Source: Azolla caroliniana (Eukaryota; Plantae; Polypodiophyta). From it: DNA of 64,000 nucleotides. A program made the translations under genes and the position numbers. The notes beneath the pieces are model-generated. The model searched no databases and was not told the DNA's origin. It saw only the letters and a list, made by a program, of their open reading frames with translations. Where the stretch lies: assembly GCA_043228905.1 (NCBI GenBank), contig JBHGNT010000017.1:3038001-3102000 (forward strand), given 5' to 3'. This document shows, one piece after another, positions 2,251-60,500 of the stretch. Within the stretch, counting starts at the first letter, position 1; every line of letters begins with the position of its first letter.

Positions 2251-2473
2251 AAGCCATTTAAACTAAACCATTCAAGGAAAGGTAAGACAAACGATTTAAA
2301 ACCAAAACCGTTTAGAGGAGGTTGCAATAGCAGGGTTCTAGAGGGTTCTAGAGCGTGAAACTAAGGGGGTTCCCAATTGAATGACCCAACCTTACCAAAA
2401 GACCCAGCCTTTAAGGATTGACCTTTTATTTTGGTTTTATTTTATAGATTACGCCAGTGATTCATAAATAAAA

Positions 2474-7524: not shown

Positions 7525-8731
7525 TTCTTTTTGTTGTTCTTGTCGCAGTTTATTCTCTGTGTTTCTGTCGTGGTGGTGGAGGTGATCGTGTTAGAAGAAG
7601 AAAAAAACAACAAAGGAAGCTTCTTTTTTTTTTGGTTTGGTTTGATCTTTATTTATCCATCACGACAATAATGGCGCCGAAGAAGAAGGGGTCATCGAGC
7701 CTCCTCTGCAAATGGGTCAGCAGTTGTCTCAATCGCTCTGGGTTCGAATCCTGCCTCTCCCTTTTCTCTCCATACAAAATCATTGCAACACGTACTCGAA
7801 TGCTTTCTCTTTTTAACTGTCTATGTATATACGTATTCCCCCCCTATACATACGTATATCCGCGTATACATATGTGTATGTATATCCATCCATTCATACA
7901 CTTGTCAGTGCTTCTTTTATCAATTTTTATTTTATTTTTTACTGTAATAAAGAAACAAGCCTTCATCTTTTTTCTCTCTTCGTCGATTCTGTCTACATAC
8001 TGATTCCTTACTCTTTATCATCTTCATCTTTGTCTCTCTGCGTATTTATCCTAAGAAAGTTATCTCTAATTAGGGCTCTGTCTCTTTCTTTCTCTCTCGC
8101 ACGCACACAGGAAGGTACGACCTTTGATTAGAGCTTCTTCTCGCATCAACCCATTGAGAAATAATGATCATGCAGATCAGTCGCATATCATCCTTACCTG
8201 TATTAGAACCCAACATCCTGCCTTCAACCCTAGGGTTTCAGATTTCGAGACTTACTATTGTTATTTGTATAGTGGGTTGCTAGGGTTTTGTTTTTTTCCT
8301 TCTTATATGCAAATTTGTACACTTAGGTTTCTTTAATTAGTTGATAACGTTATGCATTAGACTTCTAGGGTTTTCTTTACCTGCTGTATGAATCAATAAC
8401 CCCTCGCATGAATTCGAGGCTTTTCTCATATACCCCAGAACCCTAGGAATTTTTCTTTAAAATCCGCACTAGATTGTATTGGATTTTTTCATATATATGC
8501 ACGTGAAAATCTCCAGATTTTTTTTTCTTAATCACTAGATATATAGGTTATTTTCTTATATGCAACAGATTTTTCCTCATTTTATGCACGGAATTTCTAG
8601 TTCTTTTCATTCTCTGTTTCCTTTATACACCTTATAGGCAAATTTGTAGGGTTAATGTTTCACTAACTACTGTGCATGGGATATATTGAATCTAAGGTTC
8701 GCAACTGATGGTGTGCTTATTTTTTTGCAGA

Positions 8732-27820: not shown

Positions 27821-27835
27821 ATGTATGTATGTATG

Positions 27836-27866
<31 letters not shown>

Positions 27867-27889
27867 CAATGTATGTATGTATGTATGTA
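27821..27889. repeat. (ATGT)n microsatellite, left flank of the composite MULE
   Basis: Directly visible; one ATGTAACAATGT interruption. Confidence 0.95.
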
Positions 27890-28401
27890 CGTGGTGTCTA
27901 ACGCTCGTGACTAACTGCTACCAAATATTAAAGAGGGCAAGTGAGGGAATCGCGGAGACGGTGCAGGTCACATCGCTGATGGCGCGTTCGATCTCCACCA
28001 TCCAAGATGGATAAAAAGCTGACAACGTCTGTCAGAAAGAGCCCGACTCTGCGAAAAGGAGCCCGACTCTGCCACAGGGAGCCCGACTCTGTCAAAAAGG
28101 AGCCCCGCTGTCAGACAGCCTATGCAAGAGGGAGCCCGACTCTGTCAGAAGGAGCCCCGCTGTCAGATCACATCAGTAAGAAGGAGCCCGACTCTGTCAA
28201 AAGGAGCCCGACTCTGTAGCAACAAACATCAAAAACTCCACAAAATTGTAAGTGTACAACAAATATTTTCCCATGGTCAACCAATGGCAATCTCCTCCTA
28301 GCCCGACTAGCACCTCTTTGTAATTTTCCGGAGTGGGATTTGGAAGTGTTTGGGGAGCTGCCAATAAGTTCTTGCGAGATGTCTATTGTTGCACGAGATG
28401 T

Positions 28402-29266
28402 CTATTGTTGCTGCCAATAAGTTCTTGCGAGATGTCTATTTTCGACATACCTTTCCAATATTCTCTCTGCTTCTTTAAGTCGAGACCTTTGATCCCTACA
28501 ATTCGCACGAGGTGCAAACCGACCACTCTCACATATTTCTTGTCGTTGCTTGTACCACTCTATTACCGTTCCTCCTATGCAAGTGCCAGTTTCACTGTCC
28601 CCGATTAAGACATGTAGAAGGTCGGTAATTGATCGGTTTATTCTTCCCCTCAAGGCAGTATACTTGATAAACTGCCAATGTCTTTCCACAATATTGGTAG
28701 TGTCAACATGTCCATAGTTGAACATTCTACCAAACTTGGGCCAGAGTTTCCTCCACACACATGTCAAACCACAAATGTGTTTGGGACCGTTGCCCATTTA
28801 CAACAATCCAAGATTGACGGTCTGTTGCAACCACATTAGTTATGGCATTATATGACGTCCAACATTTATCGATCACTATCGCATTTGGCCTCACCGTGGG
28901 CATCCTTGCGAATATGACTCTCAAACAAGTTTCTAATGCCACTTGCTCATGGTTTGACCCCTTATCAGAACTACAAAGCATGTACCATAATGGGATCCCA
29001 ATTCCCATGGCATTGGGGGCAACTGCGGCATATAATGGTAGCCCAAATTGGTTTGTTTTAAATGTCGAGTCGATTGCCCAAGAGTTGTTTAGGGTCAACC
29101 GCTCACACATTTCCAACATCCATTGATCTTGAAGTATCAAGATAAATGGTTGTATGGCGGGAGATCCTGGTTCACCATGCAGGTAGGGTTGAACATGTGC
29201 CACTTTCCCAAGATCTCGGAGTGCATAGGCATGATGCAAGATCAAAGCCCAATCAACCTTAGTCAT
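28402..29266 (-). pseudogene. MULE DDE transposase remnant (5'-truncated, internally deleted, frameshifted)
   Basis: WAIDSTFKTNQFGLPLY (first D), PNAIVIDK (second D) and, in another frame, VDTTNIVERHWQFIKY (E). The CxxH and insertion domain normally between them is missing. A local duplication at 28357-28440 disrupts the 3' end. Confidence 0.85.
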
Positions 29267-29296
29267 GGCACTCCCGATTTTTAACCTTAGTCATAA

Positions 29297-29490
29297 GATT
29301 GACATTGAGTCTTATTATGTCTTTGAAATGGATTGACATTGAGTCTTATTTATGTCTTTGAAATGGATTGACATTGAGTCTTATTTATGTCTTTGAAATG
29401 GAATGACATTGAGTCTTATTATGTCTTATTATGTCTTTGAATTGGATTGACATTGAGTCTTATTATGTCTTTGAAATGGATTGACATTAT
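29297..29490. repeat. Tandem array, ~35-bp unit GATTGACATTGAGTCTTATTATGTCTTTGAAATG x ~5.5
   Basis: Directly visible inside the MULE. Confidence 0.92.
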
Positions 29491-29634
29491 GTCTTACTAT
29501 GTATTCTTTACGTAAGGACCGAAGCACTCTTTCTATATACTTACTCTTTATTGGCCTTTCTCAAAAACCATTGCCTTCACTACTTGTCAATAAGCTATTA
29601 GTCTTATTCTTTTGACACCCAAAACAATTCCAAT

Positions 29635-29962
29635 ATACAACCAAAATGATTTTCATATACAACCAAAATGAGATTCATACACAACCAAAATGAGATTCAT
29701 ATACAACCAAAATGCGATTCAAAAATTGATTCATATTCAACCAAGATGAGATTCATATACAACCAAAATGAGATTCAAAAATTGATTCATATTCAACCAA
29801 GATGAGATTCATAGACAACCAAAATGATTTACATTGAGTCATATACAACCAAAATGATTTACATTGAGTCATCTACAACCAAAATGATTTACATTGAGTC
29901 ATCTACAACCAAAATGAGATTCATATACAACCAAAATGATTTACATTGAGTCATATACAACC
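29635..29962. repeat. Tandem array, 22-39-bp units built on ATACAACCAAAATGA x ~12
   Basis: Directly visible. The 30-bp variants include ACATTGAGTC, shared with the neighbouring array. Confidence 0.92.
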
Positions 29963-29984
29963 ATTGCAAAATGACTCCACGTAG

Positions 29985-32002
29985 TCATATGCCCAAAGTC
30001 CTTCGTGCCCATTTTGCCATGATTTTCCGAAGGAGCTCCACGTCTTCGAATCCAAACCATTGCTCCTTACCCTACAATTGAAGATGCCATCAACAAAAAC
30101 AAAAACAAATGCTCAAATTCAAATCTCATAAATACTTACAAATTGATCGGACTCAAATCCTTGAATCAACTCCTCGACCAACATGCGAATAGTTTGCATC
30201 ACGTAATACCCACAATCGGTCCCATTAGGTTGGGTTGGGATACGCAATTCATGGATTTGCCTGTTGTTGATGATGCAATGGTCATGTGTCCGACTCGAGA
30301 TATGTCGTATAGCCAAATCACCCAATGTCCGCACCCTGGTAGTCGGATAAATATTTAGTGGATCACAAAATATAATTGGGCTCCTCACCTTGGCATCGAG
30401 ACCCGTAGGAGTTTGTCGCATCTTCAACCAAAGCACCCAATGCCCTGCGTTCAATATTGGAATGAAGACATAATCCCTTTCAGGAACACGAGTGAGTACG
30501 TCTTTGACCTTACCGCCTTGGCCTTCTAGTTGTACCCATAGCAGATCCACAATATGAAACCGCTTGTTGATCTCGGGGGGCAGCGAGTACTCCATCCATA
30601 AATGGAAGAGGGTTATCATCCATGTGGATGCCATCTCCCCTACTGTGATCAACGAACATAGTTGTATCTCCGACAAGAAGACCGCTACATCCAGTCGTCG
30701 GCATGCCACCTGATACCTGTTTATTAGGCTAGATTAGTAACTACTAAACAAACATGATGTTAACTATTGATATCATGCCCCCAGCATAACAACATACCTG
30801 GTGAACTTATTTCTTGCAGAGTTATCCCATGTTTTCGAGATTGTCCCTGGACCAACAAAGACAATCCCAATGTCTGCATCCTCATCTGTGTCAGATGATG
30901 TAATGAACTCCGAATTACATGGGTCCACTTCTTTCCTGCGGATTTGGATTTTCGGCCTCCTTGCTTGTTGCATTGTCGATTCTGACAGTTGGTCTTGACC
31001 ACCATCGATCTCGACATGTGCCTCATCCTTTGGTATGGGAATTCCATGACTCTTACACTACAATTCATACATAAGATTCACACATAATCATAAGTTTTAA
31101 ACTCACATAAGATGCACACAAAATCATAAACCATACTTACATAATCTTTAGACGCATCCGCAATCTTCAACCTCACTTTTGCCATCCTATGCTCCTTTCC
31201 CTCGTCATACCTGGCCATTTGTTGGCTAACGAATTGAGCAATGAAATCAGCCTCCTTGCATGTTCGAAGTGAGTCCGGAGTGGCTTTGAAGATTTTTATT
31301 GCTCTTGTCCTCAACTTCCTCATGTGTGATTGGCGTGATCTATTATACTTGAGCTCCGGATCCAAAAAACGATTTATTGATCGTTGTCTTTCGACATCGC
31401 TGAAGAATGATGTGGCTGTACTCCTCATGGAAGTCGATTGCTCTTCTTCGTCTATCTTTAGCCCTCGAGGCAGTATTACATGGATGCCATGTGCCTTCTG
31501 TAAATGGGCCTCCATGTCCGCTTTTTTTCGAAACCATCTCCCCTCTTTTCTACACGAATCTCCCACAATACAGGTGCGACATTTGATACCTGTTGAGTCT
31601 CTTCCACACTTGAAGAGGGACATAGGGTCCACTACAACAATGGTGTCACATTTGCATTAGAAAAACCCAAAATATGCTTACATCAATAATGATTATAAGA
31701 ATGGACATAAACTCACCATTTACTTTGATATCTTCAACACCTGGACCCACGTCATGCATGGGGTTCGTATCCATGCTCGAGTCTTGAGTAATGATGTTTT
31801 CAGCCTCCGTATCATTGGATTTGGGGCACCTAACACCCTTTCTTACATAAACCCTAAACCAACATTCAAGTTAGCACACAAACATTATTATTTATACACA
31901 ATATAAAGTAGAGAAATGATTCATGCCATACTTCCCTTCATAGGGTATTGTTTCACCCCAATCTGCATCAAAGTCTATGAAGATCTTGGACCGACTAGCC
32001 AT
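29985..32002 (-). CDS. MULE-encoded spliced gene: C2H2-like zinc finger plus Ulp1/C48 SUMO-protease domain
   Basis: Start MASRSKIFIDFDADW (ATG 32002), CRTC...F...HLQKAH finger, protease motifs FIPILNAGHWVL, IIFCDPL and QPNGTDCGYYV (His-Asp-Cys triad plus oxyanion Gln). Last exon GKEQWFGFEDVELLRK...GI* (stop 29985-29987). Central splice junctions not all verified. Confidence 0.75.
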
Positions 32003-32179
32003 CTGTACAAAACATTTTTAGAAAGGCATTCATTACATTACTATTATTTAGGGAGAAAAAACGCAAAGAATGTATACAAGATTTTAGATTTGACATTCAA
32101 ATGTGGGCATAAAAAAGAGCCCAATAATGCATGAATCACATGGGCAAATTCAAGCATTCAAATGTTGGCAAAATCAAAG

Positions 32180-32930
32180 TCATACATGTATTCAATCATA
32201 CACAGCCCATGGGAGATCTTAAATGCACACATACATGTATTAAATCACAGCCTATAGAAGATCTTAAATACACACAAACATGTATTCAATCATACACATG
32301 CACACACATTCGCAGCCCATGGAAGATCTAAAATACACAAATACATGTATTCAATCATACACATGTATACACACACATTCTCAAATAAATGTATTCATCA
32401 TACAACAAACACACACATTCACAGCCCAATGGGAGATCTTAAATGCACACATACATGTATTCAACCATCACACACACAAATGTATTCAATCATACACACA
32501 CAGAAATGTATTCAATCATACACATGTATACACACACATTCCCAAATAAATGTATTCAATCATACAACAAACACACACATTCACAGCCCAAAGAAGATCT
32601 TAAGTACACACATACATGTATTCAACCATCACACACACAAATGTATTCAATCATACACACATACATGTATTCAATCATACACACACAGAAATGTATTCAA
32701 TCATACACATGTATACACGCACATTCCCAAATAAATGTATTCAATCATACAACAAACACACATTCACAGCCCAAAGAAGATCTTAAATACACACATACAT
32801 GTAACCCTAAACCCATCACACACATAAAAGTATTCAATCATACACACACATACATGTATTTAATCATACACATACACACACAAATATATTGAATCATACA
32901 CACATACATGTATTTAATCATACACACATT
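32180..32930. repeat. Complex minisatellite built on CATGTATTCAATCATACAC and CACAGCCCA...AGATCTTAA units (mirror copy at 33650-34400)
   Basis: Directly visible; the source of the spurious His/Thr-rich ORFs. Confidence 0.92.
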
Positions 32931-33051
32931 TATGGTACCTATTAGAAGCAACCCTAAACCTAATAGAAAGAATATGATACCTAATAAAAACCAAAACCTA
33001 ATAGAAGGAATATGATGCCTACCTCTGGACTGCAGGTGCATGCAGTGCGTC

Positions 33052-33151
33052 NNNNNNNNNNNNNNNNNNNNNNNNNNNNNNNNNNNNNNNNNNNNNNNNN
33101 NNNNNNNNNNNNNNNNNNNNNNNNNNNNNNNNNNNNNNNNNNNNNNNNNNN
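33052..33151. other. Assembly gap (100 N)
   Basis: Run of N. Confidence 1.
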
Positions 33152-33390
33152 ACACAAAGTGGAGCCCTTCTTTAATGAGTCGGGCTCCATTTTGTATGAG
33201 CCGGGCTCCCTTTTTACGTGCCGCGCTTTTTCGCGCCTATTCCACATCCATCTTGGACGGTGGAGATCGAACGCGCCATCAGCGGTGCGACCTGCACCGT
33301 CCCTCTCCGCGATTCCCTCATTAAAGAAGGGCTCCCTTGGAGCCCGACTCATTAAAGAATGGCTCCATTTTGTCAAAAGGGAGCCCTTCT
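33152..33390. repeat. Truncated right TIR of the MULE and fold-back junction
   Basis: 33247-33320 is an inverted copy of 27942-28011. It is followed by CTCATTAAAGAAGGGCTCC, the reverse complement of 33161-33179. Confidence 0.75.
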
Positions 33391-34919
33391 CATTCATGTT
33401 CAAGGAAGTATAAAAACCCATTTTCTGTCATTTTCTGTCATTTTCTGTCATTCGTGGGTTTGAGGGTTTAGGGTTTTTGAGCGAGGCGCACCACCTGTCT
33501 GCGAGCACTCGTTGCAAACATCTCCGGTGACGCACTGCATGCACCTGCAGTCCAGAGGTAGGCATCATATTCCTTCTATTAGGTTTTGGTTTTTATTAGG
33601 TATCATATTCTTTCTATTAGGTTTAGGGTTGCTTCTAATAGGTACCATAAATGTGTGTATGATTAAATACATGTATGTGTGTATGATTCAATATATTTGT
33701 GTGTGTATGTGTATGATTAAATACATGTATGTGTGTGTATGATTGAATACTTTTATGTGTGTGATGGGTTTAGGGTTACATGTATGTGTGTATTTAAGAT
33801 CTTCTTTGGGCTGTGAATGTGTGTTTGTTGTATGATTGAATACATTTATTTGGGAATGTGCGTGTATACATGTGTATGATTGAATACATTTCTGTGTGTG
33901 TATGATTGAATACATGTATGTGTGTATGATTGAATACATTTGTGTGTGTGATGGTTGAATACATGTATGTGTGTACTTAAGATCTTCTTTGGGCTGTGAA
34001 TGTGTGTGTTTGTTGTATGATTGAATACATTTATTTGGGAATGTGTGTGTATACATGTGTATGATTGAATACATTTCTGTGTGTGTATGATTGAATACAT
34101 TTGTGTGTGTGATGGTTGAATACATGTATGTGTGCATTTAAGATCTCCCATTGGGCTGTGAATGTGTGTGTTTGTTGTATGATGAATACATTTATTTGAG
34201 AATGTGTGTGTATACATGTGTATGATTGAATACATGTATTTGTGTATTTTAGATCTTCCATGGGCTGCGAATGTGTGTGCATGTGTATGATTGAATACAT
34301 GTTTGTGTGTATTTAAGATCTTCTATAGGCTGTGATTTAATACATGTATGTGTGCATTTAAGATCTCCCATGGGCTGTGTATGATTGAATACATGTATGA
34401 CTTTGATTTTGCCAACATTTGAATGCTTGAATTTGCCCATGTGATTCATGCATTATTGGGCTCTTTTTTATGCCCACATTTGAATGTCAAATCTAAAATC
34501 TTGTATACATTCTTTGCGTTTTTTCTCCCTAAATAATAGTAATGTAATGAATGCCTTTCTAAAAATGTTTTGTACAGATGGCTAGTCGGTCCAAGATCTT
34601 CATAGACTTTGATGCAGATTGGGGTGAAACAATACCCTATGAAGGGAAGTATGGCATGAATCATTTCTCTACTTTATATTGTGTATAAATAATAATGTTT
34701 GTGTGCTAACTTGAATGTTGGTTTAGGGTTTATGTAAGAAAGGGTGTTAGGTGCCCCAAATCCAATGATACGGAGGCTGAAAACATCATTACTCAAGACT
34801 CGAGCATGGATACGAACCCCATGCATGACGTGGGTCCAGGTGTTGAAGATATCAAAGTAAATGGTGAGTTTATGTCCATTCTTATAATCATTATTGATGT
34901 AAGCATATTTTGGGTTTTT

Positions 34920-37622
34920 CTAATGCAAATGTGACACCATTGTTGTAGTGGACCCTATGTCCCTCTTCAAGTGTGGAAGAGACTCAACAGGTATCAAATG
35001 TCGCACCTGTATTGTGGGAGATTCGTGTAGAAAAGAGGGGAGATGGTTTCGAAAAAAAGCGGACATGGAGGCCCATTTACAGAAGGCACATGGCATCCAT
35101 GTAATACTGCCTCGAGGGCTAAAGATAGACGAAGAAGAGCAATCGACTTCCATGAGGAGTACAGCCACATCATTCTTCAGCGATGTGAATTCTGATTCCG
35201 AGGTACCACATATCTCTATTAAGCGTATCTTGTCAACTTTCAGCTGTCAAAATTATCGGATGACAAGCAAATAATCCAGCACCTTATAAAATTTCTCTTC
35301 AACAAAATCTAAAAATAATTTGCAATAATAGCATCCATGCTTAATCATGAAGCTATTCCACTATTTTAAACTCATAACATCTCCACAGTTATGGTGATTT
35401 ACGATCTCAAACTTACACTTCAGATGGAGTGCAGAGGCCTCTAATTTTTTTCATCCTTCAGTGAATGTTTTGTTACCTTCCTTCAATGGGCTTTGAATAA
35501 AACACCATATTAATTTTTTATAGGATAATGTCCAGCTGAGGCCACACATCAACATCTCTCTGTTTTCAGGCTCTCATCTTCTATTAAAGAATATTTTGCA
35601 CAAACAACACAAACGTAATGTTTGCCATCTTCCAAAGGTTGAATTTAATCATTAAATGATGCAGTTGATTCATCAGCATGGCACGCAATTGACTGATACA
35701 TCTATAAATCCATCCTCTATAACTATATATCCCAAATCCAAATAAAAATGCAGTGATACCTTATTTCTTCCTATGAAGACATGAACACATAAAGAAAGTG
35801 CTACCCCTTTAAGCATACCTTATTCTTTTTGGCACAGAGAAAAAATGCAACAGCTGTGAACACAGGACGCCCAAAATCAGCATGCCCTTTGCGTGATTCT
35901 GGCAAAGCAGCTATAAACCTCTTTTTGTACCTTCAATCAAAAATCTATCCATGAGAAGCCAAGCATATATAAAGAGTTGGTTTTTATTCTGACCAAACAA
36001 CCAATACTGAAAAACATACTCCGCCAAAGTCTTATGAACAGAACCTATGAGTCTCACGCAGCCAAACTGAATGGCTAACTCCCGCACATTCAAATCTGGC
36101 CTGAAAAGATGCAATTGAAATTTACTCTATTATTTATATTGGATGCTTTAAAACGTTAAACTGTCCACTCATATATGAAAAACCAACCTTAAACCAAGAG
36201 CATTCTGCAGGTTTGTTAAAGATCTTATGTAAGCCTTTTCTGATAATCCACTTACTCGTACAGCTTTTTGTCGATCAAAATCAACATGCAACCTTACAAA
36301 AAACAATCAATAAGTACGAGAACCAAAGATCAATCCATCTTGTTCTTTCACCATTGCCAGAATATGATATTAGAAATGTGCACTAGTTGCTTATTCACAT
36401 CAATGTTATTCTTGCATCATGCAAGGGCTATAATCACAGCAGAATACAAGTAAAACCTGGTTGAGATGATGTAGAGGATACTGATGCATTACATTCATAG
36501 TGACCATGCCCCTCGTCCTTTATTTGAAATAGAGTAAATTACCTTAATTGAGTAGCAAAGGCCTCTCAAATTTGATTACCTTTTTGACAACTTGCTTTGT
36601 GTCATAAAGTTATCCTAAGCAGCAATATAAATTTTTATATTCTTCCAACATTACTTCCATCATATATTATCAGTTATATACTTCACTAATGATAAGCATT
36701 GCTTCCACTTTACGGGCCTAAGTTCCAATCAATCCACATAAATTATTTTGCAACATTGTAAGAGATGAGAAGTAAATAGCAATTAGAATCATCTATGGCG
36801 TTCATTAAGTTATTTGAAATCAGCAATTTCAAAGGTCATATGCTATCTTTTCCGATTTTTGGCAAACACAACTGCAGTATTCCTATAGACACGCCATAAT
36901 ACCATAGGGTTTCCAAAAAAATATCTTGCACGTTACAAGATATCATTAACTATCCGCAATATCTCAAAATTTCTATTTCACGTGTCTTTAGACCATTCTA
37001 AACGATAGCATAAAGCATGTTAGCGTGTTTAAATGGGAGATTTCATTGATAAGTCTGGGTGACTATATCTTATACCAAGCTTTAAGAATAATTCTAAACA
37101 ATACTATATAAGTCATTCCGGATTAATTATATAGAAAAGTATCACTATGTTAGGACCGCAGACACATTGATCGCCTTTTGGTCGTTTCTAAACGAAATCA
37201 TAAACCGTGTTGGCACGAAAGAATACACTGCATCATTAAGGTCAAGACTGAAAGCTACCTTTTATTCATATGTTTTGTCACTATACACAAAATCGTAAAT
37301 GTACGTTCATATGCGCAAATAGAAGCTTTATAAAGAAAAGCAAGAAAAATAGGTGTGTATGAAGACGAAAAACACTTACAGAGAACACGCGATCTCGAAA
37401 CATAAGACGGCCTTGCAGACCTCCCCCTTTGTGAAAGAAAAAACCAGAAATAGCAGAGTGAGATTTTAAAGATCGAGATGGATAAAGAAGAGAGACGCAA
37501 AAGATACTAACCAAACCAAAGGCAGATGAGTCGAACTGTAGTTTACTGAGGCGTTCGAGCTCCTGCGCTTTTCTGATCACGGCAGGAAATCCAGACATGC
37601 CGAGCCTGTCGCGCAAATCCAT
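34920..37622 (-). pseudogene. ORC6: Truncated ORC6 copy (exons 1-6, 173 aa) fused in frame to 86 codons of antisense MULE sequence
   Basis: ATG at 37622 with exons and splice sites preserved. Exon 6 reads LKVDKIRLIEICGTSESEFTS, then continues LKNDVAVLLMEVDC...SHLH* to the stop at 34920-34922. Confidence 0.8.
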
Positions 37623-40600
37623 TGCCAAAGAGAGAAGAAGAAGCAGAAGGAGAAGACGATGACTGCGTCGACGCCCCACCGAATATTGCAAGAAGGAATC
37701 GCCATAGCTGTGTTACGTGTATGTGAAAATCTGGCGGGAAAACAAGGGAAAGGAAAGATTTCAGACTCGAGTTTCTCTCCTTTGTGTTTGTGTGTGTTTG
37801 GGGCCAGGGGAGAAGGGGCGGGGGCCAAAGGGGGAGGGAGAGAAGAGAGTTGTGGCAAGAACTTTGTTGAAGGTGCTCGAAAGTCCCGAGATAGAATGGC
37901 ATAACTATTCGCCTTGCAAGCTAGATATTCAGTGTAGACTTTGACAAAGATGAGGATGGTTGATTGAATTTTGGCGTAGGGCATACAGTATAGTAACTGT
38001 CATAACCAAGTTCCAACAACTATGCGGTCGATTCGGTGTAGAGCATGCTTGTATTAATTATTGCATACCATCTACAGTTGAAGGGGTTTTAGGACAGTTG
38101 ATTCTTTAGACATCTACCTTTTTTGTACATGTTGCTTATTAAGATATGCAAGCATGTATAAATGATAAAGGAGTGTGTATTTATTCATATTTAAATATAA
38201 CCATTTTAGTTTGTAAAACCTCGTAGATGTCTAAAGAATTTTATTAGATACATGACATCGAATCACATTTTCCCGTAGGGATTAACATAATTGATGCCTT
38301 GGAGTGTTGCACTTCCTTAGCTCACTACCACGTCCCAAAGGGTTGCCTTCCTCTCAATGGGCTAACTAGATTATTGGGGAACGTCACTCCCCAATGGGTA
38401 CGATTATGTCATACATCAACTTATAAAAGCACTTAACTTGTTACGGGCATGACCATATAATATCCCGTGATGAGAATTTACCGTAGTATTCTATGCATGT
38501 GGATAAGTGCGAGGGCTAAACGAGAGTGTAAAGAAGGGGAGGATTACTTTTAATCCTCGAGATTAAGACAACCTGTTAGGCCAAGTGTGAACTTGCTTGG
38601 GACCCTTGGGTCTTGTTATAAATATGAGGCCTAGCTACCCTCATTTGATCATCACTTGACTACATCGAGACTCTGTTTTGTGGTGGGTCAGCTCCTATAG
38701 TGAGCATGCCAGCACCATGTACGACTTGACGCCACGACGGTGGTATGGGACGCTGATCGAGGCTCGAGTCTGTCTCGATCCCTTCACTCAGGGATAGTCG
38801 GGTGGATTGATACCCTTCTTTCTCTCTCTCCTTTCTTGTTTCATATATCTTTTATCCTTATCAAATGCTTATGTTAGACCATCGCTCTAACATACGCCAT
38901 CAACCACTTAAGTTAATACAAATTAAGACACACTTAATCACGTGTTAGTCTCGATTAAATGGACAATCATTGTATATGAAACATAAGAGGTGTCTCAATT
39001 AAATAGATATTTATTAAAAAGAAATAACATATATATCTCAAATAATTAGGTGAAAACACTATACTAATGGCGCTTACTGGATGTAGAGGTTAGAGAATAA
39101 GGACCAAAAGGTAACCCCAAAGTTATGGCTCACGATGGCCCCTTTGATGTTACGGCTATTGCCCTTCCTTTTATACAAATTGGAAACCCCAGAAGTTCCC
39201 TTTCACATAACAAGCCCATTGGTCATTGATGTTCATACAACCAATAGTTGAAATTGCAATTTTTAGAGCCTTGTATAGTTTATTACAACTAAAAAAACAT
39301 GACATTATTTTCCTTGATAGACATGTGCATCCAATTTATGGTATGCATTATTATTTTTTCGCAATGACAAACCTTAATATCTTGCTCCATGTTGTTATCT
39401 GGATAAGACATTGTTGAGTTAAAATATATATGATATTCTTGAAGTCTGTTATCACGACATAACAATTCAGAGTCATATACCATACACTTTTCAAGCATTA
39501 GAAGAAACAAATCGCACTTTTCTAACAAGAAGGAGAATGTTTAGTTCTACTTGGTCGTGGATGTCAACTTTTGACACGACATTGGTTTGACCTTGGTATG
39601 AACCATGTGCTTTCCAAGTGGACATGGCTTGCCTGGTTAGTGGTTAATTCATTATTGGGAGAAGTGCTAAAAGTCGGGGTTAGTTTGCCATTTTATTGAT
39701 CGAATAACACATATTTATATTCGAGTTTGGGTTGATCATTTGGAAAATAATATTAACTTTGACACGTTTGGGGAAATAGATAAGACTTAGGGGAAATTTC
39801 AAAGTTTTTCCTTTTTCTCAATATGCTAATTTTATTTTGTGTTTGATATTCTTAACATTATATTATGTCCATCAATGTCGTGGACCGTGGTTGTTCGATC
39901 TTTCTCATTAGCCAAAATTATTGGAGAATTTCCCTATTGCTAAAATGTTATCAATTCGAATGTAAAATTTCATCTATAATTGTTTCTTGAACTTCTTTTC
40001 CAACGTTTTCATAAGTATGTATTCTTACAAATCCCACAGAAGCAATGGATTCCCATGGACTTTCTATCTATTTATTTTTCTTAGTCTTGTAGTATCAAAT
40101 AAGAACAATTTGGCCGTTGCAACTATAAAAGGTATCCATGGCACACTATATCTTAGTTTTTTTGTACCCAATTTTCTGCATCACTTGCATGATGTGCATT
40201 TTATGATTGATGCAATGGATACTTTCAATTTAGAATGCATTGGTCATACTATCCTAATTATAGGCCTCGAGAATCTCTTAATCTCTAATGCACATCTAAC
40301 TCAACAACATACAATGCGTAACAATATAAGCTAGTCTTTGGTCGTCAATAAAGGAGTTTACACATGTTTTATATGGAAGTATAAATATAAAATTGTCATT
40401 GATTATTTATAATGTTTTGGATAACACACTAATTGCATACTTGTGCAAATTGGAACTTTGTTTGTATAAACATTCAAAATGTGAGTAAATTTGTTTTGAT
40501 TATTGTCCAGTTTGACTATAGTCAAAATAAATTGCTATCTTATTTCATTGTTGGTTTGGGGGTTATATATAAGTTGTTAGCTACAACTCATTTGGAATTT

Positions 40601-41526
40601 AGTTAGCAACCATGGTGTTTCACAGATACTTCCTAATTATTGCCACATGCATTCACCGTGACAATTCTAATCGAGTAATAAGAGTAATTCATTTATTAGT
40701 TCTAGGTGTGAATGCAATAGATGGTTAATTAATTTGCATGAAGAACATTGTAGATGAAGGGAAAGCCATATTCAACGAAAAGAACCATCAACAATGAGAT
40801 TAACAAAATCATGTCTAATGAGAATATGATAAATTTTATAATGTGATGTTAATCTTCTTTAGTGAGAAAATGATTTAACTATGGAATGTAATTCTAACAT
40901 GCCATTGACAAATGAGTGAAAAAAAAAGCTCATGGATGGTGCACTCTCCAAATCTAAATTTAAGTCCCCCTTATTGCAAAAACATTTGGTAGTAACAAAA
41001 AGGCATCAAAAGCTACGAAGAATAATGTGATTTCTACAAGCTCTAATGGAACATATATGTTGTTAATAATATAAAGCAACATGTTTGTTTAATTATAAGG
41101 GAGAAACATGTAATTCATGTTCTAAGGTTCAAAACAGTAATACAACTTTGTCATGGGTATTGGATATATCTAAATAATCATATATCATGCACTCAACCTC
41201 ATGACACTCATGGAGAGAGTTGGAACTTCTCTATTTGAAAACAACATATGAATCAAATGTGCAATAGCAATAGACGATAGACAAACAAACACATGTCAGC
41301 AAACATTGAATTGAATTGATCTATAATGATTTACATACATTTTCATCTTTGGGTGCATGGTGGTTGACATGTGTTGGTATGTATATCTATGACTAGATCC
41401 TCGAATCCTTGAGAGTACTTGCTTATATTATGGTACATAGCACGCCAAGTTCCAACCATCCATGGGAATAATGTCTCACAAATTGAGTAACTCCAAAACA
41501 ATCACACTATACAAGAAAGTTCATCA
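35181..41526 (-). repeat. 6.3-kb inverted duplicate of 53677-60028 (ORC6 upstream region plus exons 1-6)
   Basis: Paired ORFs (37281-37691/57527-57937, 35911-36114/59095-59298, 39289-39528/55654-55893, 39987-40334/54854-55207) are near-identical. Scattered substitutions and several indels show the copies are not identical. Confidence 0.97.
37734..37741 (-). promoter_or_regulatory. E2F site retained in the duplicated ORC6 promoter
   Basis: GCGGGAAA, which is TTTCCCGC on the minus strand, ~115 bp upstream of the ATG. Confidence 0.7.
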
Positions 41527-41806
41527 CACTATACAAGAATGACAGCGGGGCTCCTTCTGACAGAGTCGGGCTCCCTCTTGCATAGGCTGTCTGACAGCGG
41601 GGCTCCTTTTTGACAGAGTCGGGCTCCCTGTGGCAGAGTCGGGCTCCTTTTCGCAGAGTCGGGCTCCTTCTGACAGACGTTGTCAGCTTTTTATCCATCT
41701 TGGACGGTGGAGATCGAACGCGCCATCAGCGATGTGACCTGCACCGTCCCTCTCCGCGATTCCCTCACTTGCCCTCTTTAATATTTGGGAGCAGTTAGTC
41801 ACGAGC

Positions 41807-41946
41807 ATGTATGGATGGATGGATGGATGGATGGATGTATGTATGTATCATGTATGTATGTAATAATGTATGTATGTATGTATGTATGTATGCATCATGT
41901 ATGTATGTATGTGTGCATCATGTATGTATGTATGTATGTATGTATG
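41807..41946. repeat. (ATGG)n/(ATGT)n microsatellite, right flank of the composite MULE
   Basis: Directly visible; same strand orientation as the left flank, with an ATGTAATAATGT interruption. Confidence 0.95.
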
Positions 41947-43979
41947 CACCCAAGTCATTTGTCGTCTTAACCTATGAATGCATGCATTGATGTTGTATTT
42001 CACATCTACATAATCAAGGATGTATGACGTGTTGCGGTCACGTTTCCATGATTTAGGGTGTACCCACCGTGTTCACATGCTCCCTATTTAGGATGTGTCC
42101 ATCAAGGTCAGCAACCATTTTTGACTCAGGATGTACATGTTGAGCTCAGAACCTTGTGTTTCCCTTATGGTTCTCTCGAAACATAGCCCAAAAAGAGAGA
42201 GTTGTATTTATCAGACAAGCCCATCATGTTTTCACTCTCGAGATACCTTGTCGACACATACTCACACCTTGATGACTTTCTAAAACAAGAGCACTCATCT
42301 TCATACTCAACTTTGAGACATCCTCGGTATACTAAAACATTGGGTGTATTACATACATATAAGCACCCTAATTCCTTGAGTATTTTTATTTTTGATAAGA
42401 TATAGCCTTACAAACAAATAAACTTTAGTCTGTGTGTGCATGTTGAATATCTATATAGGTTGCAGTTTGTGGAAGTGTGATTCCTAAACACCTATTTTTA
42501 GAAATGTGAAGCTAAACATCATATCAAAAACATGAAGGTAAATACAACATCAAACTTGTATTAATTTTCAATCTATGAGGTGTAGAAAGCGAGAGGATCA
42601 AACTCTTAATGTGCATTATATCAAACATAAAATATGCATAATATTATAATGAGTTGGAACCCTCAATATAGGGTTGCAAAGCACAAGATTCACCTCCACA
42701 AACCATCATGTTTAAGTGGTTAAACTTAAGTTTTTTAAATGACATGAGCTCGTGAATTTATATTCTGATGTATCATTGTGGATTATAACAAAACTCTCAT
42801 AATGTGTAAACGCCTATGATTCAGTGCATAATCTCATTGCCAATTGCCATTGCCTCCCATGACAGGTTTCCTTGTCTGAAGGCAATGCTTTCGTATTAAA
42901 CTTCCACATGTAATGTTCATCGGTATGAAAGTGATCGCAGATCCAATGGTGTCATTTCGAACCCCTAAGAGCCACGAATGCAGCTAGATCATAATAGAGT
43001 TCTGAAAGTGGATTTTGGTACACGTTCCCAAACATCATTTTGAAAAGCTCGCGTATACAAAAGCATAGTCATGTTACACAAAATACTTATTAGTCAAGTA
43101 GAAAAGTTTGGCTTGTTCTTATTAATCAACTAGCTAAGGTATAGATTAATTTGTTGCTTCTTATTATGACAGCATATAGTATCAATGCCATGTGTCAAGG
43201 TTCTTTATCGATTTGCTTTAGTTCAGCTTGTGAATATCCAGATAAACATTCTTTGATTTCAGTAACGTTTTTCACAAAAACATTGACTCCCTAATCTAGA
43301 AGCAAATAAATTAGGAGCTGTTATCTCATATATTTTCAATACTTTGGGTATGTTACATGTAGCTCAACAAACACCTTCAACCTCTCGAATTTTATCCAAA
43401 CTCAGATAAAATTCATCTATCTTCATTCAAGGTTAATATTTCTGCATACCAGCTACAATATATGAGAAGATAAAATGCAGTGTAAAACATTTTCATGATT
43501 CTAAACATAATCGCAGATGTACAAGTCAGTGACCAGACTTTATCACAACAATTGAATGCTACTATAATCTTAGTAATTAGTAATTTGCCAGCCAATTCAT
43601 ATGCATTTCATTTCGCATTAAATTAAACTAAGATCTAGATGCACAGTTAGTATATACTGCTGTAGAACAAAAATAGGTTGAGTGCATATTGTGAATCTCA
43701 TCAATAAATAAAAAACTGACATTCATTTGGGTCCAATTAATAATTTGCAAAAGTTAATAAATTAGCAGGCAGTAGTTGTACATATGTTACATCATTTTTC
43801 TATGCATTATTGGCATACAGCCTCAAAAATATGCAAGAAAAGTTCATATAATTCATATTGAACACCTTGTGGTGTAACTTGTTATAATAGTAATAAACCA
43901 TGATGTTCCTGCAAACAAAATATGTGCCATCCCATGCACTTTCTGAAACATATATGTTAGGAATACCTCATCAGTTCCT

Positions 43980-53124: not shown

Positions 53125-56100
53125 CTTGCGCAGGGAATTCAAACTGTCCGCTGGGAAACAAAATGAAGTAAACGATCATGTGACTGGGTCAAGAATTCAT
53201 GGAATTTAGACAATAACATGTGATTACCGTTGCTGTTATTGAAATTAAAGTGAGGAACATGGAACATGAAACAAAATTTTGCTTTTAGCAGCGTTAATTA
53301 AGCTGAAATATTGGATCAACTGCTCTCAAGGTGTGAAAGAAGGGAATGTTGTAAATGAAAAGTGAGGAATGGATGAATGAAAGTTTTTCTGGGTGAAGGC
53401 GATATGATGGAAAGAGAACTGGTTACCTGTGGTGGAGCTCGGCATGTAGATCGATCTGCCACTGTGGAGCTTGGAGAAGAGAAACGGGAACACGCGATAG
53501 GATCGATGTAGCCCCTAATATTCTTCCGCACTTTCTTCAGGCTGTGTCTATGTGTGCATGTTTTTCTGCTTTTAAACTTTTAACTCTGCAAAATAAAGAC
53601 ATAGAGACAAAATATAATCCCATATACTTTGCCTATAGTTATAAATATGTACATACATAGCCTTCTAACGATAAGTTGATGAACTTTCTTGTATAGTGTG
53701 ATTGTTTTGGAGTTACTCAATTTGTGAGACATTATTCCCATGGATGGTTGGAACTTGGCGTGCTATGTACCATAATATAAGCAAGTACTCTCAAGGATTC
53801 GAGGATCTAGTCATAGATATACATACCAACACATGTCAACCACCATGCACCCAAAGATGAAAATGTATGTAAATCATTATAGATCAATTCAATTCAATGT
53901 TTGTTGACATGTGTTTGTTTGTCTATCGTCTATTGCTATTGCACATTTGATTCATATGTTGTTTTCAAATAGAGAAGTTCCAACTCTCTCCATGAGTGTC
54001 ATGAGGTTAAGTGCATGATATATGATTATTTAGATATATCCAATACCCATGACAAAGTTGTATTACTGTTTTGAACCTTAGAACATGAATTACATGTTTC
54101 TCCCTTATAATTAAACAAACATGTTGCTTTATATTATTAACAACATATATGTTCCATTAGAGCTTGTAGAAATCACATTATTCTTCGTAGCTTTTGATGC
54201 CTTTTTGTTACTACCAAATGTTTTTGCAATAAGGGGGACTTAAATTTAGATTTGGAGAGTGCACCATCCATGAGCTTTTTTTTTCACTCATTTGTCAATG
54301 GCATGTTAGAATTACATTCCATAGTTAAATCATTTTCTCACTAAACAATATTAACATTACATTATGCAATTTATCATATTCTCATTAGACATGATTTTGT
54401 TAATCTCATTGTTGATGTTCCTTTTCGTTGAACATGGCTTTCCCTTCATCTACAATGTTCTTCATGCAAATTAATTAACCATCTATTGCATTCACACCTA
54501 GAACTAAGAAATGAATTACTCTTATTACTCGATTAGAATTGTCACGGTGAATGCATGTGGCAATAATTAGGAAGTATATGTGAAACACCATGGTTGCTAA
54601 CTAAAATCCAAATGAGTTGTAGCTAACAACTTATATATAACCCCCAAACCAACAATGAAATAAGATAGCAATTTATTTTGACTATAGTCAAACTGGACAA
54701 TAATCAAAACAAAAATGTTTATACAAACAAAGTTCCAATTTGCACAAGTATGCAATTAGTGTGTTATCCAAAACATTATAAATAATCAATGACAATTTTA
54801 TATTTATACTTCCATATAAAACATGTGTGAACTCCTTTATTGACGACCAAAGACTAGCTTATATTGTTACGCATTGTATGTTGCTGAGTTAGATGTGCAT
54901 CAGAGATTAAGAGATTCTCGTGGCCTATAATTAGGATAGTATGACCAATGCATTCTAAATCAAAAGTATCCATTGCATCAATCATAAAATGCACATCATG
55001 CAAGTGATGCAGAAAATTGGGTACAAAAAAACTAAGATATAGTGTGCCATGGATACCTTTTATAGTTGCAACGGCCAAATTGTTCTTATATGATATTACA
55101 AGACTAAGAAAAATAAATAGATAGAAAGTCCATGGGAATCCATTGCTCTGTGGGATTTGTAAGAATACATAATTATGACAACGTTGGAAAAGAAGTTCAA
55201 GAAACAATTATAGATGAAATTTTACATTCGAATTGATAACATTTTAGCAATAGGGAAATTCTCCAATAATTTTGGCTAATGAGAAAGATCGAACAACCAC
55301 GACATTGATGGACATAATATAATGTTAAGAATATCAAACACAAAATAAAATTAGCATATTGAGAAAAAGGAAAAACTTTGAAATTTCCCCTAAGTCTTAT
55401 CTATTTCCCCAAACGTGTCAAAGTTAATATTATTTTCCAAATGATCAACCCAAACTCGAATATAAATATGTGTTATTCGATCAATAAAATGGTAAACTAA
55501 CCCCGACTTTTAGCACTTCTCCCAATATAATGAATTAACCACTAACCAGGCAAGCCATGTCCACTTGGAAAGCACATGGTTCATACCAAGGTCAAACCAA
55601 TGTCGTGTCAAAAGTTGACATCCACGACCAAGCAGAACTAAACATTCTCCTTCTTGTTAGAAAAGTGCGATTTGTTTCTTCTAATGCTTGAAAAGTGTAT
55701 GGTATATGACTCTGAATTGTTGTGTCGTGATAACAGACTTCAAGAATATCATATATATTTTAACTCAATAATGTCTTATCCAGATAACAACATGGAGCAA
55801 GATATTAAGGTTTGTCGTTGCAAAATAATAATAATGCATACCATAAATTGGATGCACATGTCTATCAAGGAAAATAATGTCATGTTTTTTTAGTTGTAAT
55901 AAACTATACAAGGCTCTGAAAATTGCAATTTCAACTATTGGTTGTATGAACGTCAATGACCAATGGGCTTGTTATGTGAAAGGGAACTTTTGGGGTTTCC
56001 AATTTGTATAAAAGGAAGGGCAATAGCCGTAACATCAAAGGGGCCATCGTGAGCCATAACTTTGGGGTTACCTTTTGGTCCTTATTCTCTAACCTCTACA

Positions 56101-57476
56101 TCTAGTAAGCGCCATCAGTATAGTGTTTTCACCTAATTATTTGAGATATATATGTTATTTCTTTTTAATAAATATCTATTTAATTGAGACACCTCTTATG
56201 TTTCATATACAATGATTGTCCATTTAATCGAGACTAACACGTGATTAAGTGTGTCTTAATTTGTATTAACTTAAGAAGTCTTTGAGGCTTAAGTGGTTGA
56301 TGGGGTATGTTAGAGCGATGGTCTAACGTAAGCATTTGATAAGGATAAAAGATATATGAAACAAGAAAGGAGAGAGAGAAAGAAGGGTGCCGATCCACCC
56401 AACTATCCCTGATGAAGGGATTGAGATAGACTCGAGCCTCGATCAACGTCCCATACCACTGTCGTGGCGTCAAGTCGTACATGGTGCTAGCATGTTCACT
56501 ACAAGAGTTGACCCACCGCGAAACAGAGTCTCGACGTAGTAGTCAAGTGATGATCAAATGAGGGTAGCTAGGCCTCATATTTATAACAAGACCCAAGGGT
56601 CCCAGGCAAGTTCACACTTGGCCTAACGGGTTGTCTTAATCCCAAGGATTAAAAGTAATCCTCCCCTTCTTTACACTCTCGTTTAGCCCTCGCACTTATC
56701 CACATGCATAGAATACTACGGTAAATTCTCATCACGGGATATTGTATGGTCATGCCCGTAACAAGGTAAGTGCTTTTATAAGTTGATGTATGACATAATC
56801 ATACCCATCGGGGAGTGACGTTCCCCAATAATCTAGTTAGCCCATTGAGAGGAAGGCAATCCACTAGGACGTGGCAGTGAGCTAAGGAAGTGCAACACTC
56901 CAAGGCATCAATTATGTTAATCCCTACGGGAAAATGTGATTCGATGTCATGTATCTAATAAAATTCTTTAGACATCTACGAGGTTTTACAAACTAAAATG
57001 GTTATATTTAAATATGAATAAATACACACTCCTTTATCATTTATACATGCTTGCATATCTTAATAAGCAACATGTACAAAAAAGGTAGATGTCTAAAGAA
57101 TCAACTGTCCTAAAACCCCTTCAACTGTAGATGGTATGCAATAATTAATACAAGCATGCTCTACACCGAATCGACCGCATAATTGTTGGAACTTGGTTAT
57201 GACAGTTACTATACTGTATGCCCTACGCCAAAATTCAATCAACGATCCTCGTCTTTGTCAAAGTCTACACTGAATATCTAGCTTGCAAGGCGAATAGTTA
57301 TGCCATTCTATCTCGGGACTTTCGAGCACCTTCAACAAAGTTCTTGCCACAACTCTCTTCTCTCCCTCCCCTCCCCCCCCCCCGCCCCTTTGGTCCCTGC
57401 CCCTTCTCCCCTGGCCCCAAACACACACAAACACAAAGGAGAGAAACTCGAGTCTGAAATCTTTCCTTTCCCTTGT

Positions 57477-57484
57477 TTTCCCGC
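57477..57484 (+). promoter_or_regulatory. Canonical E2F binding site in the ORC6 promoter/5' leader
   Basis: TTTCCCGC (consensus TTTSSCGS) ~115 bp upstream of the ATG of a replication-licensing gene. A second E2F-like TACGCCAAAA lies at ~57224. Confidence 0.75.
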
Positions 57485-57595
57485 CAGATTTTCACATACA
57501 CGTAACACAGCTATGGCGATTCCTTCTTGCAATATTCGGTGGGGCGTCGACGCAGTCATCGTCTTCTCCTTCTGCTTCTTCTTCTCTCTTTGGCA

Positions 57596-60500
57596 ATGGA
57601 TTTGCGCGACAGGCTCGGCATGTCTGGATTTCCTGCCGTGATCAGAAAAGCGCAGGAGCTCGAACGCCTCAGTAAACTACAGTTCGACTCATCTGCCTTT
57701 GGTTTGGTTAGTATTTTTTGCGTCTCTCTTCTTTATCCATCTCGATCTTTAAAATCTCACTCTGCTATTTCTGGTTTTTTCTTTCACAAAGGGGGAGGTC
57801 TGCAAGGCCGTCTTATGTTTCGAGATCGCGTGTTCTCTGTAAGTGTTTTTCGTCTTCATACACACCTATTTTTCTTGCTTTTCTTTATAAAGCTTCTATT
57901 TGCGCATATGAACGTACATTTACGATTTTGTGTATAGTGACAAAACATATGAATAAAAGGTAGCTTTCAGTCTTGACCTTAATGATGCAGTGTATTCTTT
58001 CGTGCCAACACGGTTTATGATTTCGTTTAGAAACGACCAAAAGGCGATCAATGTGTCTGCGGTCCTAACATAGTGATACTTTTCTATATAATTAATCCGG
58101 TATGACTTATATAGTATTGTTTAGAATTATTCTTAAAGCTTGGTATAAGATATAGTCACCCAGACTTATCAATGAAATCTCCCATTTAAACACGCTAACA
58201 TGCTTTATGCTATCGTTTAGAATGGTCTAAAGACACGTGAAATAGAAATTTTGAGATATTGCGGATAGTTAATGATATCTTGTAACGTGCAAGATATTTT
58301 TTTGGAAACCCTATGGTATTATGGCGTGTCTATAGGAATACTGCAGTTGTGTTTGCCAATAATTGGAAAAGATAGCATATGACCTTTGAAATTGCTGATT
58401 TCAATGGACGCCATAGATGATTCTAATTGCTATTTACTTCTCATCTCTTACAATGTTGCAAAATAATTTATGTGGATTGATTGGAACTTAGGCCCGTAAA
58501 GTGGAAGCAGTGCTTATCATTAGTGAAGTATATAACTGATAATATATGATGGAAGTAATGTTGGAAGAATATGAAAATTTATATTGCTGCTTAGGATAAC
58601 TTTATGACACAAAGCAAGTTGTCAAAAAGGTAATCAAATTTGAGAGGCCTTTGCTACTCAATTAAGGTAATTTACTCTATTTCAAATAAAGGACGAGGGG
58701 CATGGTCACTATGAATGTAATGCATCAGTATCCTCTACATCATCTCAACCAGGTTTTACTTGTATTCTGCTGTGATTATAGCCCTTGCATGATGCAAGAA
58801 TAACATTGATGTGAATAAGCAACTAGTGCACATTTCTAATATCATATTCTGGCAATGGTGAAAGAACGAGATGGATTGATCTTTGGTTCTCATACTTATT
58901 GATTGTTTTTTGTAAGGTTGCATGTTGATTTTGATCGACAAAAAGCTGTACGAGTAAGTGGATTATCAGAAAAGGCTTACATAAGATCTTTAACAAACCT
59001 GCAGAATGCTCTTGGTTTAAGGTTGGTTTTTCATATATGAGTGGACAGTTTAACGTTTTAAAGCATCCAATATAAATAATAGAGTAAATTTCAATTGCAT
59101 CTTTTCAGGCCAGATTTGAATGTGCGGGAGTTAGCCATTCAGTTTGGCTGCGTGAGACTCATAGGTTCTGTTCATAAGACTTTGGCGGAGTATGTTTTTC
59201 AGTATTGGTTGTTTGGTCAGAATAAAAACCAACTCTTTATATATGCTTGGCTTCTCATGGATAGATTTTTGATTGAAGGTACAAAAAGAGGTTTATAGCT
59301 GCTTTGCCAGAATCACGCAAAGGCCATGCTGATTTTGGGCGTCCTGTGTTCACAGCTGTTGCATTTTTTCTCTGTGCCAAAAAGAATAAGGTATGCTTAA
59401 AGGGGTAGCACTTTCTTTATGTGTTCATGTCTTCATAGGAAGAAATAAGGTATCACTGCATTTTTATTTGGATTTGGGATATATAGTTATAGAGGATGGA
59501 TTTATAGATGTATCATTCAATTGCGTGCCATGCTGATGAATCAACTGCATCATTTAATGATTAAATTCAACCTTTGGAAGATGGCAAACATTACGTTTGT
59601 GTTGTTTGTGCAAAATATTCTTTAATAGAAGATGAGAGCCTGAAAACAGAGAGATGTTGATGTGTGGCCTCAGCTGGACATTATCCTATAAAAAATTAAT
59701 ATGGTGTTTTATTCAAAGCCCATTGAAGGAAGGTAACAAAACATTCACTGAAGGATGAAAAAAATCAGAGGCCTCTGCACTCCATCTGAAGTGTAAGTTT
59801 GAGATCGTAAATCACCATAACTGTGGAGATGTTATGAGTTTAAAATAGTGGAATAGCTTCATGATTAAGCATGGATGCTATTATTGCAAATTATTTTTAG
59901 ATTTTGTTGAAGAGAAATTTTATAAGGTGCTGGATTGTTTGCTTGTCATCCGATAATTTTGACAGCTGAAAGTCGACAAGATACGCTTAATGGAGATATG
60001 TGGTACCTCGGAATCGGAATTCACATCGGTTTGTCTCTTGTACTTGATAATTCTTTTGCCCACATGATTATGTCGAAGAGACATTTGAGCAAGCATTTTT
60101 TTTGCAGGTAGCAACATCTATGATAGATCTTTGTTTGGACATGCTAGGTGTTCAGAAGGAAAAGAAAGACTCAAAGTCTGTGAAATGTAATAGAGGTAGA
60201 CTTTCTCATATGTTCCAAAACTTATTTAACTATGATATATGCTTACATGCTACATAACCTTTAATGTGAGGGAAAACTTGAAAATGTTCCGCCATATTTT
60301 CTTTGTTTTCCTCCAATGTCTCTGAGTTTCTTTATTTTTTTATACCCACACTTGCATATAACACAATTCTCACTTCATAGATTTGCTAGATGCTTTGCCA
60401 AACAAGAGGAAGCATGAAGATGACTATTCAGATAGTGATATTGATTCAGCTGATGAAGATGGGCCTGAGGTATGTTGGTTATCCAAACATCTTTGCAACC

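Follow-up and report, generated by a model that had tools for sequence, protein, structure and literature searches.

An inverted ORC6 segment within a defective Mutator-like element of Azolla caroliniana: a candidate case of error-prone break repair at a plant transposon

How plant Pack-MULEs, Mutator-like elements (MULEs) that contain host gene fragments, acquire genes is still debated, and the gap-filling or template-switch model has been systematically supported only in animal transposons (PMC8277862). A collection of 281 single-copy animal Pack-TIRs, in which host DNA lies between the remains of transposons with terminal inverted repeats (TIRs), was attributed to gap filling by template switching; 57% of these were within 15 kb of the parental copy and 68% showed microhomology (Tan et al. 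2021, PMC8277862). The applicability of gap filling to plant Pack-MULEs was posed there as a question. Classical plant Pack-MULEs, as summarised in the same paper, have matched ends, a 9-bp target-site duplication, mostly short fragments and unlinked parents, and one third of them are multicopy. Two maize systems are also close in structure: Mu killer, a rearranged member of the Mutator family (PMC3440606), and the composite insertions of Ac/Ds (10.1101/2020.01.07.897926). Here, a locus from a 64,000-nt stretch of Azolla caroliniana DNA (contig JBHGNT010000017.1, positions 3,038,001 to 3,102,000; hereafter the window, whose numbering is used throughout) is described, in which a MULE is joined to an inverted copy of part of the nearby ORC6 locus.

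From left to right, the structure consists of a defective MULE, an inverted copy of part of its own interior, the inverted ORC6-locus segment, and a second MULE end. The best account of it, with a probability of roughly 55%, is that the defective MULE was rebuilt in place by error-prone break repair, which would make it a transposon-centred complex rearrangement that did not transpose here as a unit. Cis-proximal, microhomology-guided capture by gap filling has already been published for animal transposons; this locus would be a plant MULE example. It shares with the single-copy Pack-TIRs the host DNA between TIR transposon remains, a parent in cis within 15 kb, microhomology at the breakpoints, and its nature as a single-copy unit without sign of later transposition. 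Those cases are animal, whereas this one is a plant MULE, its filler is 6.35 kb long and includes the promoter and 5′ part of ORC6, and a 1.87-kb fold-back copy has been added. Like the Pack-MULEs of rice, maize and Arabidopsis, it holds a host gene fragment between MULE termini and no working transposase, but its termini are two left-type ends of different elements, it has no clean target-site duplication, its parent lies at a distance of 12 kb, and a second copy did not turn up in the searches.

The repeat map of the window was based on repeat finding and self-BLAST. Both revealed an inverted terminal pair, 27903-28165 and 41806-41540, with 97.4% identity over 267 nt, and a palindrome, 31394-33051 and 35186-33529, with 0 mismatches in 1658 nt. 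Self-BLAST aligned 35181-41530 with the reverse complement of 53674-60028 at 97.5% identity, and a MAFFT alignment of this ORC6 copy with its donor contained 87 substitutions and 10 indels. The geometry given by a preliminary description made from the letters alone (outer TIR-like repeats, an inverted MULE copy and an inverted ORC6-locus copy, with junctions near 33320, 35181-35186 and 41526-41540) is confirmed as real in the assembled sequence, and reading of the junction sequences recovered the three inner junctions (J1, J2 and J3) at these places.

All three junctions lie within one contig and span less than 8.4 kb, to the right of the only run of N in the whole window (33052-33151). At J1 (33317-33320) the TIR core is cut 40 nt before the tip and joined, through a common CTCA, to inverted interior sequence. 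At J2 (35181-35186) comparison of the junction sequences showed that MULE position 31394 is joined to position 60028 of the ORC6 locus over CGATGT, which is common to both; a microhomology of 6 bp or more is expected at about 0.2% of random joins, by our own estimate. At J3 (41527-41539) the homology to the donor stops at ...TCATCA and is followed by 13 nt that appear to have been re-copied, after re-annealing on ATCA, from 41505-41517, 23 nt upstream, and then by the left-type MULE end; the 17-mer ATCACACTATACAAGAA accordingly starts at 41501 and 41523 in the copy and occurs once in the donor. Microhomology and locally templated insertions are marks of cellular end joining and template switching, and to our knowledge assemblers neither join on 4-6 bp nor create templated insertions. 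The junction sequences thus support the view that the three joins were formed by microhomology-guided template switching or end joining during break repair, and the breakpoint signature of gap-filled Pack-TIRs, microhomology or templated filler, is present at each of them (4 bp at J1, 6 bp at J2, and 4-bp re-annealing plus 13 nt at J3). J2 also leaves open a frame on the plus strand (34948-35274), in which 79 codons of the first open reading frame (ORF) of the MULE accessory gene are followed by 29 codons antisense to ORC6.

The identity of the MULE ends was established by comparison with related copies, obtained by scanning metagenome contigs with a 37-nt TIR-core pattern, which yielded 14 plant contigs bearing ends of the family. 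The ends in these contigs fall into two kinds that have the 40-nt tip and the core, about 80 nt long, in common: left-type ends terminate in ...GTCACGAGC, followed inward by one motif array, and right-type ends terminate in ...GACACCACG, followed by a different array. The ends therefore agree over the roughly 120 nt of tip and core in the 14 copies, as expected of the long TIRs of MULEs, and differ in their subterminal arrays. In the window, the MULE transposase domain PF10551 matches an ORF at 28727-29266 (minus strand), and an Ulp1 protease domain (Peptidase_C48) was found in the ORF at 30119-30709 (minus strand), one of the accessory-gene ORFs that occupy 30119-31632 on this strand; the first of these (31078-31632) is severed by J2 in the inverted copy. 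A family copy in a plant-associated metagenome assembly (L009) has an intact, intronless ORF of 999 aa for the MULE transposase (1748-4747, minus strand), which suggests that autonomous members exist. The window copy keeps only 332 of these 999 residues (403-579, 645-756 and 929-971), in remnants at 28264-29287 on the minus strand, and is for this reason regarded as non-autonomous. The pairing of a MULE transposase, the 999-aa ORF of L009, with an Ulp1 protease gene resembles the Ulp1-carrying Kaonashi-type MULEs, a likeness that covers the family background only and not the rearrangement.

Comparison with the 14 copies further showed that both outer terminal repeats of about 265 nt are left-type ends. 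The one on the left (27903-28275, plus strand) has the 40-nt tip, complete to the final base, the core of about 80 nt and the left-type subterminal arrays. The one on the right (41540-41806, minus strand, tip at 41806) is 98.9% identical to the left-type end of L011, differs from 27903-28165 by 3 substitutions and a 4-nt indel, and is not the partner right end of the left MULE. The 13 nt immediately outside the left tip, CGTGGTGTCTAAC (27890-27902, plus strand), match the outermost 13 nt of the L002, L004, L005 and L015 right tips at every position, occur nowhere else in the window, and adjoin the (ATGT)n microsatellite of the left flank (27821-27889, the last 9 nt being ATGTATGTA, 27881-27889) exactly as canonical right tips do. 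These 13 nt are a right-tip remnant of an older resident element, and the left outer boundary of the structure is 27890 instead of 27903. The presence of such a remnant between the microsatellite and the left tip argues that the structure was built inside an older element and was not moved as a unit; the outermost landmarks, which are the remnant of a right tip at the left border and a left tip at the right border, are the footprint of an older element in the opposite orientation. The right flank is likewise an (ATGT)n-type microsatellite (41807-41950), and direct contact with (ATGT)n or (ATAC)n is seen for at least 8 of the 14 ends from unrelated contigs, so this microsatellite seems to be a target of the family or the place where its members form chains. 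No target-site duplication was found at 27903/41806 (GTGTCTAAC vs ATGTATGGA). The proposal of the preliminary description that one composite MULE is framed by its own TIR pair fails on these counts: the ends are of the same type, they differ by 4 events in 267 nt, they lack a duplication, and a foreign tip remnant stands beside one of them. The ORC6 segment does lie between MULE sequence and a MULE end (35187-41526) and has a MULE-free parent elsewhere, as in a Pack-MULE, whereas a matched pair of ends with its own duplication is absent.

In the palindrome, arms of about 1.87 kb are separated by a spacer of about 230 nt, and 1658 nt of arm sequence are available from either side. The sequenced part of the left arm (31394-33051, plus strand) shows 0 mismatches to 33529-35186 and is followed by the assembly gap of 100 N (33052-33151), whose flanks are collinear with five canonical family copies. 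From those copies about 270 nt are expected to be missing, consisting of the rest of the left arm plus about 66 nt; continuity across the gap is therefore plausible, and the gap is plausibly a true hole in that arm, for which the palindrome is probably responsible. Most of the spacer is made up of the left MULE's TIR core and right-type subterminal region (33152-33320, plus strand), which lack the outer 40-nt tip and are 98-99% identical to L004, L005, L013 and L015. The right arm (33321-35186, minus strand) is an inverted copy of the right-side interior of the left MULE. Four variants (33531, 33539, 33540 and 35115) and a 26-nt deletion that have no counterpart in the five family copies are common to both arms, which argues that the right arm was copied from the left arm in place. 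The arms differ at 0 of 1658 positions, compared to 4 events in 267 nt between the two left ends (binomial p of about 4e-4, own calculation), and this inequality points to an origin of the two left ends from different elements and to a young fold-back. It also weakens the suggestion that the right arm is the resident element's own interior. A misjoin at the gap of two contigs holding separate elements was considered as well and is weakened, as the right-hand contig crosses J1 and the spacer and enters the left arm, and the canonical copies show the same order of sequence on either side of the gap.

Inverted duplication of part of an element is also the hallmark of Mu killer of maize, a partial inverted duplication of a Mutator-family element with two same-type TIRs, and at both loci a hairpin RNA is possible in principle. 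Mu killer, however, duplicates the 5′ region of the transposase gene and TIRA, and silencing by it has been demonstrated (PMC3440606), whereas the arms described here cover part of the right-side interior, namely motif arrays and the Ulp1-type gene's first exon.

Public sequencing data were consulted as Logan contigs of other samples, comprising four runs (X1, X2, X4 and X11) from three organisms, for the stretch 33152-39151; X1 and X2 represent one organism in two studies, and X4 another. At the arm variants 33531, 33539 and 33540 only the other letter occurs in any of the four runs' contigs, and at 35115 the window's letter is held by part of the depth in X1 and X4. Within the motif-array region of the MULE, 34152-34351 had no contig of at least 95% identity in X1 and X2 and high depth in X4 and X11, and the array variant seems to be specific to certain samples or species.

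The captured segment (35187-41526, minus strand) is an inverted copy of 53677-60022, as shown by self-BLAST and alignment, and carries upstream DNA together with the ORC6 promoter region and the gene's 5′ part, the copy breaking off within the gene. The locus at 53677-60028 (plus strand) has the ORC6 domains at 58903-59298 on the plus strand, continues as a gene beyond 60028, and carries no MULE sequence at the borders of the copied interval; this locus, 12-18 kb away, is the parental one. It starts 11.9 kb from the right tip, in cis and nearby as in gap-filled Pack-TIRs, although the assembled allele is not the template haplotype. The remark in the preliminary description that donors rarely lie adjacent is true of plant Pack-MULEs but not of animals, given the 57% of Pack-TIRs within 15 kb of the parent (PMC8277862).

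Allele comparison showed that the letters of the copy are not peculiar to it. X2 agrees with the window's donor at 19 of 19 listed sites and in both indels, and it has 30 differences, exactly as many as there are substitutions between copy and donor in the compared interval. X4 sides with the copy at 18 of 25 sites and in both indels, and X1, even though its contig runs on as the donor locus, is copy-like at 19 of 30 sites with 13 additional private differences. As copy-type letters occur at the single ORC6 locus of other samples, most of the divergence between copy and donor is standing ORC6 variation, and the ORC6 template was a haplotype other than the assembled neighbour allele. Two readings fit: the template may have been on the homologous chromosome, or it may have been the true cis allele, hidden by a phase switch of the assembly between 41807 and 53673. 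Thus, the idea of three template switches in break repair with a nearby template, put forward in the preliminary description, is upheld as to the signatures of switching or end joining and the parental locus 12-18 kb away, and has to be amended in that the assembled allele was not the template. Dating of the event from the 1.4% divergence between copy and donor was rejected, since the differences are mostly standing variants, and the locus offers a caution for the dating of captures generally: copy-parent divergence may reflect standing polymorphism or assembly phasing and not age. Within the captured segment, about 600 nt (38352-38951, parental 56250-56850) have contig depths that sum to 1e4 to 3e5 in each of the four runs, compared to 25-45 for the neighbouring single-copy sequence, and represent a very high-copy repeat or an organelle-like insert. 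By homology, an ORF of the upstream ORC6 region matched one short contig.

From the anatomy, the junction signatures, the end types, the sharing of alleles and the absence of the structure from other samples, we infer a trigger, an order of events, a template location and a single event rather than several, as follows. An older MULE of the family would have occupied the (ATGT)n microsatellite, oriented so that its right tip lay to the left and its left end to the right. Another copy, which was non-autonomous (27903-33320), would then have integrated in the opposite orientation 13 nt inside the older right tip, as suggested by the left tip at 27903, which is flush with the 13-nt remnant; the family's habit of adjoining (ATGT)n makes such nesting plausible. 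Two right ends would thereby have come to face each other, a likely site of breakage, and error-prone synthesis may have started there from a 3′ end at 33320. In a first step, fold-back on CTCA about 230 nt behind would have allowed 1.87 kb of the same MULE to be copied in reverse, as far as 31394. In a second, a jump on CGATGT would have led into ORC6, about 25 kb away, where 6.35 kb were copied toward the break (60028 down to 53677). Slippage, with 13 nt copied again, would have come third, and the last step would have been a join, at 41540, with the 267 nt still left of the older element's left end. Read from the coordinates, all junctions are consistent with one strand extended in one direction. 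The gap-filling model predicts a parent in cis and nearby, with microhomology at the breakpoints (PMC8277862), and the agreement of the locus with this prediction supports rebuilding in place. If the structure is real, the locus shows the gap-filling model acting on a plant MULE, with all junctions and the parent within one 64-kb window; the capture is large enough for the promoter and several exons of ORC6, an essential replication gene, and the same event would have left behind an inverted repeat comparable in kind to the one by which Mutator is silenced in maize.

Several observations weigh against rebuilding in a single event at this site. A single event and several successive events are inseparable on the present data. 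The left arm is broken by the gap, and the adjacency of the contigs rests on the scaffolder and on collinearity with the canonical copies. The possible 9-bp duplication of the older element (ATGTATGTA, 27881-27889, vs ATGTATGGA, 41807-41815) matches at 8 of 9 positions, which is uninformative within an (ATGT)n microsatellite. J1 and J2 were spanned by no listed contig of the four runs within 33152-39151, a stretch that covers these two junctions, and there is no read-level support. In X1 and X2 the ORC6 part is covered by one long contig, whose match ends precisely at 35181 and which continues without a fork as the parental locus, extending 2.6-3.5 kb beyond the position equivalent to J2; in X1, X2 and X11 the family contigs exit the window exactly at J1 on both sides. 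The check that the preliminary description had set for itself, sequence across the junctions, could thus not be passed with these four runs, two of which lack J2. Exact look-ups of the ORFs across J2 (34948-35274) and J3 (41507-41698) returned no record, a homology search with the J2 ORF returned only family ORFs of 62-83% identity that continue as canonical MULE sequence beyond the junction, and a 30-nt J2 pattern had 0 matches among the metagenome contigs scanned. Nor was J2 seen, as a trace of further transposed copies, in the four runs of three organisms, the protein-collection search or the metagenome contig scan, among which the source genome is not included. The structure is thus private, polymorphic or, less likely, artefactual. 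On internal evidence it is likely to exist in the source genome, and at least two other samples lack it.

An assembly artefact is the strongest of the alternatives, while still unlikely. A heterozygous individual or mixed data could have led to a copy-type ORC6 haplotype being misplaced as an inverted duplication, or chimeric long reads could stand at the start of the right contig, or contigs could have been misjoined at the gap. Such an origin would account for the fact that the copy matches the one haplotype of X4 and the donor that of another sample, X2, with no run containing both, for the position of a perfect palindrome beside the sole gap, and for the finding of no junction in any run or collection. 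A false duplication, however, leaves unexplained why the segment is bordered by MULE interior on one side and a MULE tip on the other, with microhomology and a templated insertion, and three junctions within 8.4 kb would have to be accommodated in one contig. The spacer of about 230 nt and the CTCA join are unlike a missed-adapter palindrome, and the collinearity of the gap flanks with canonical copies speaks against a misjoin.

Slightly less probable is a stepwise and older history, in which a sibling MULE nested into the tip of the resident, the centre of the resulting palindrome was deleted (J1), and a separate, abortive gap repair placed ORC6 in the interior (J2 and J3), the arms being kept identical by gene conversion. 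Closely spaced palindrome arms do become homogenised, the precise left tip at 27903 points to normal integration, and the divergence of the left ends (1.5%) is close to that between ORC6 copy and donor (1.4%). Against this history, most copy-donor differences are shared polymorphisms and not new mutations. Moreover, the left end of a sibling resident should match as closely as the arms do, and two samples lack J1 and J2; over 3.3 kb, the donor haplotype of one of them is the same as the window's.

A Pack-MULE at birth appears more doubtful again. Here, one repair event at two facing MULE ends, with three template switches, including one into the homologue's ORC6, would have created a potentially mobile 13.9-kb unit with two good left ends, equipped with the ORC6 promoter and 5′ exons and with a self-hairpin comparable to that of Mu killer; if so, capture and self-silencing would have come from the same event. 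By far the least probable is a finished Pack-MULE, or an Ac-style composite made by alternative transposition and re-replication, that was formed elsewhere and inserted here: two same-type termini are inverted at the borders, as in the maize composites (10.1101/2020.01.07.897926) and Mu killer (PMC3440606), and the family does insert beside (ATGT)n, but there is no target-site duplication at 27903/41806, the ORC6 piece is contiguous with neither transposon end at the parental locus, the four runs hold no second copy of J2, and the parental locus is only 12 kb away. An Ac/Ds-like origin would also lead one to expect a perfect flanking duplication and host DNA contiguous with the donor element (10.1101/2020.01.07.897926), and neither is seen at this locus, where the ORC6 piece starts 11.9 kb away; the resemblance to those composites lies in borders formed by transposon termini, inverted and fractured copies together with nearby host DNA, and end joining.

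Outside the rearrangement, an Rfam scan of the window gave no match, and exons of a gene for cofactor-independent phosphoglycerate mutase (iPGM) were identified at 8708-11226 on the plus strand, with matches to the Pfam families Metalloenzyme and iPGM_N.

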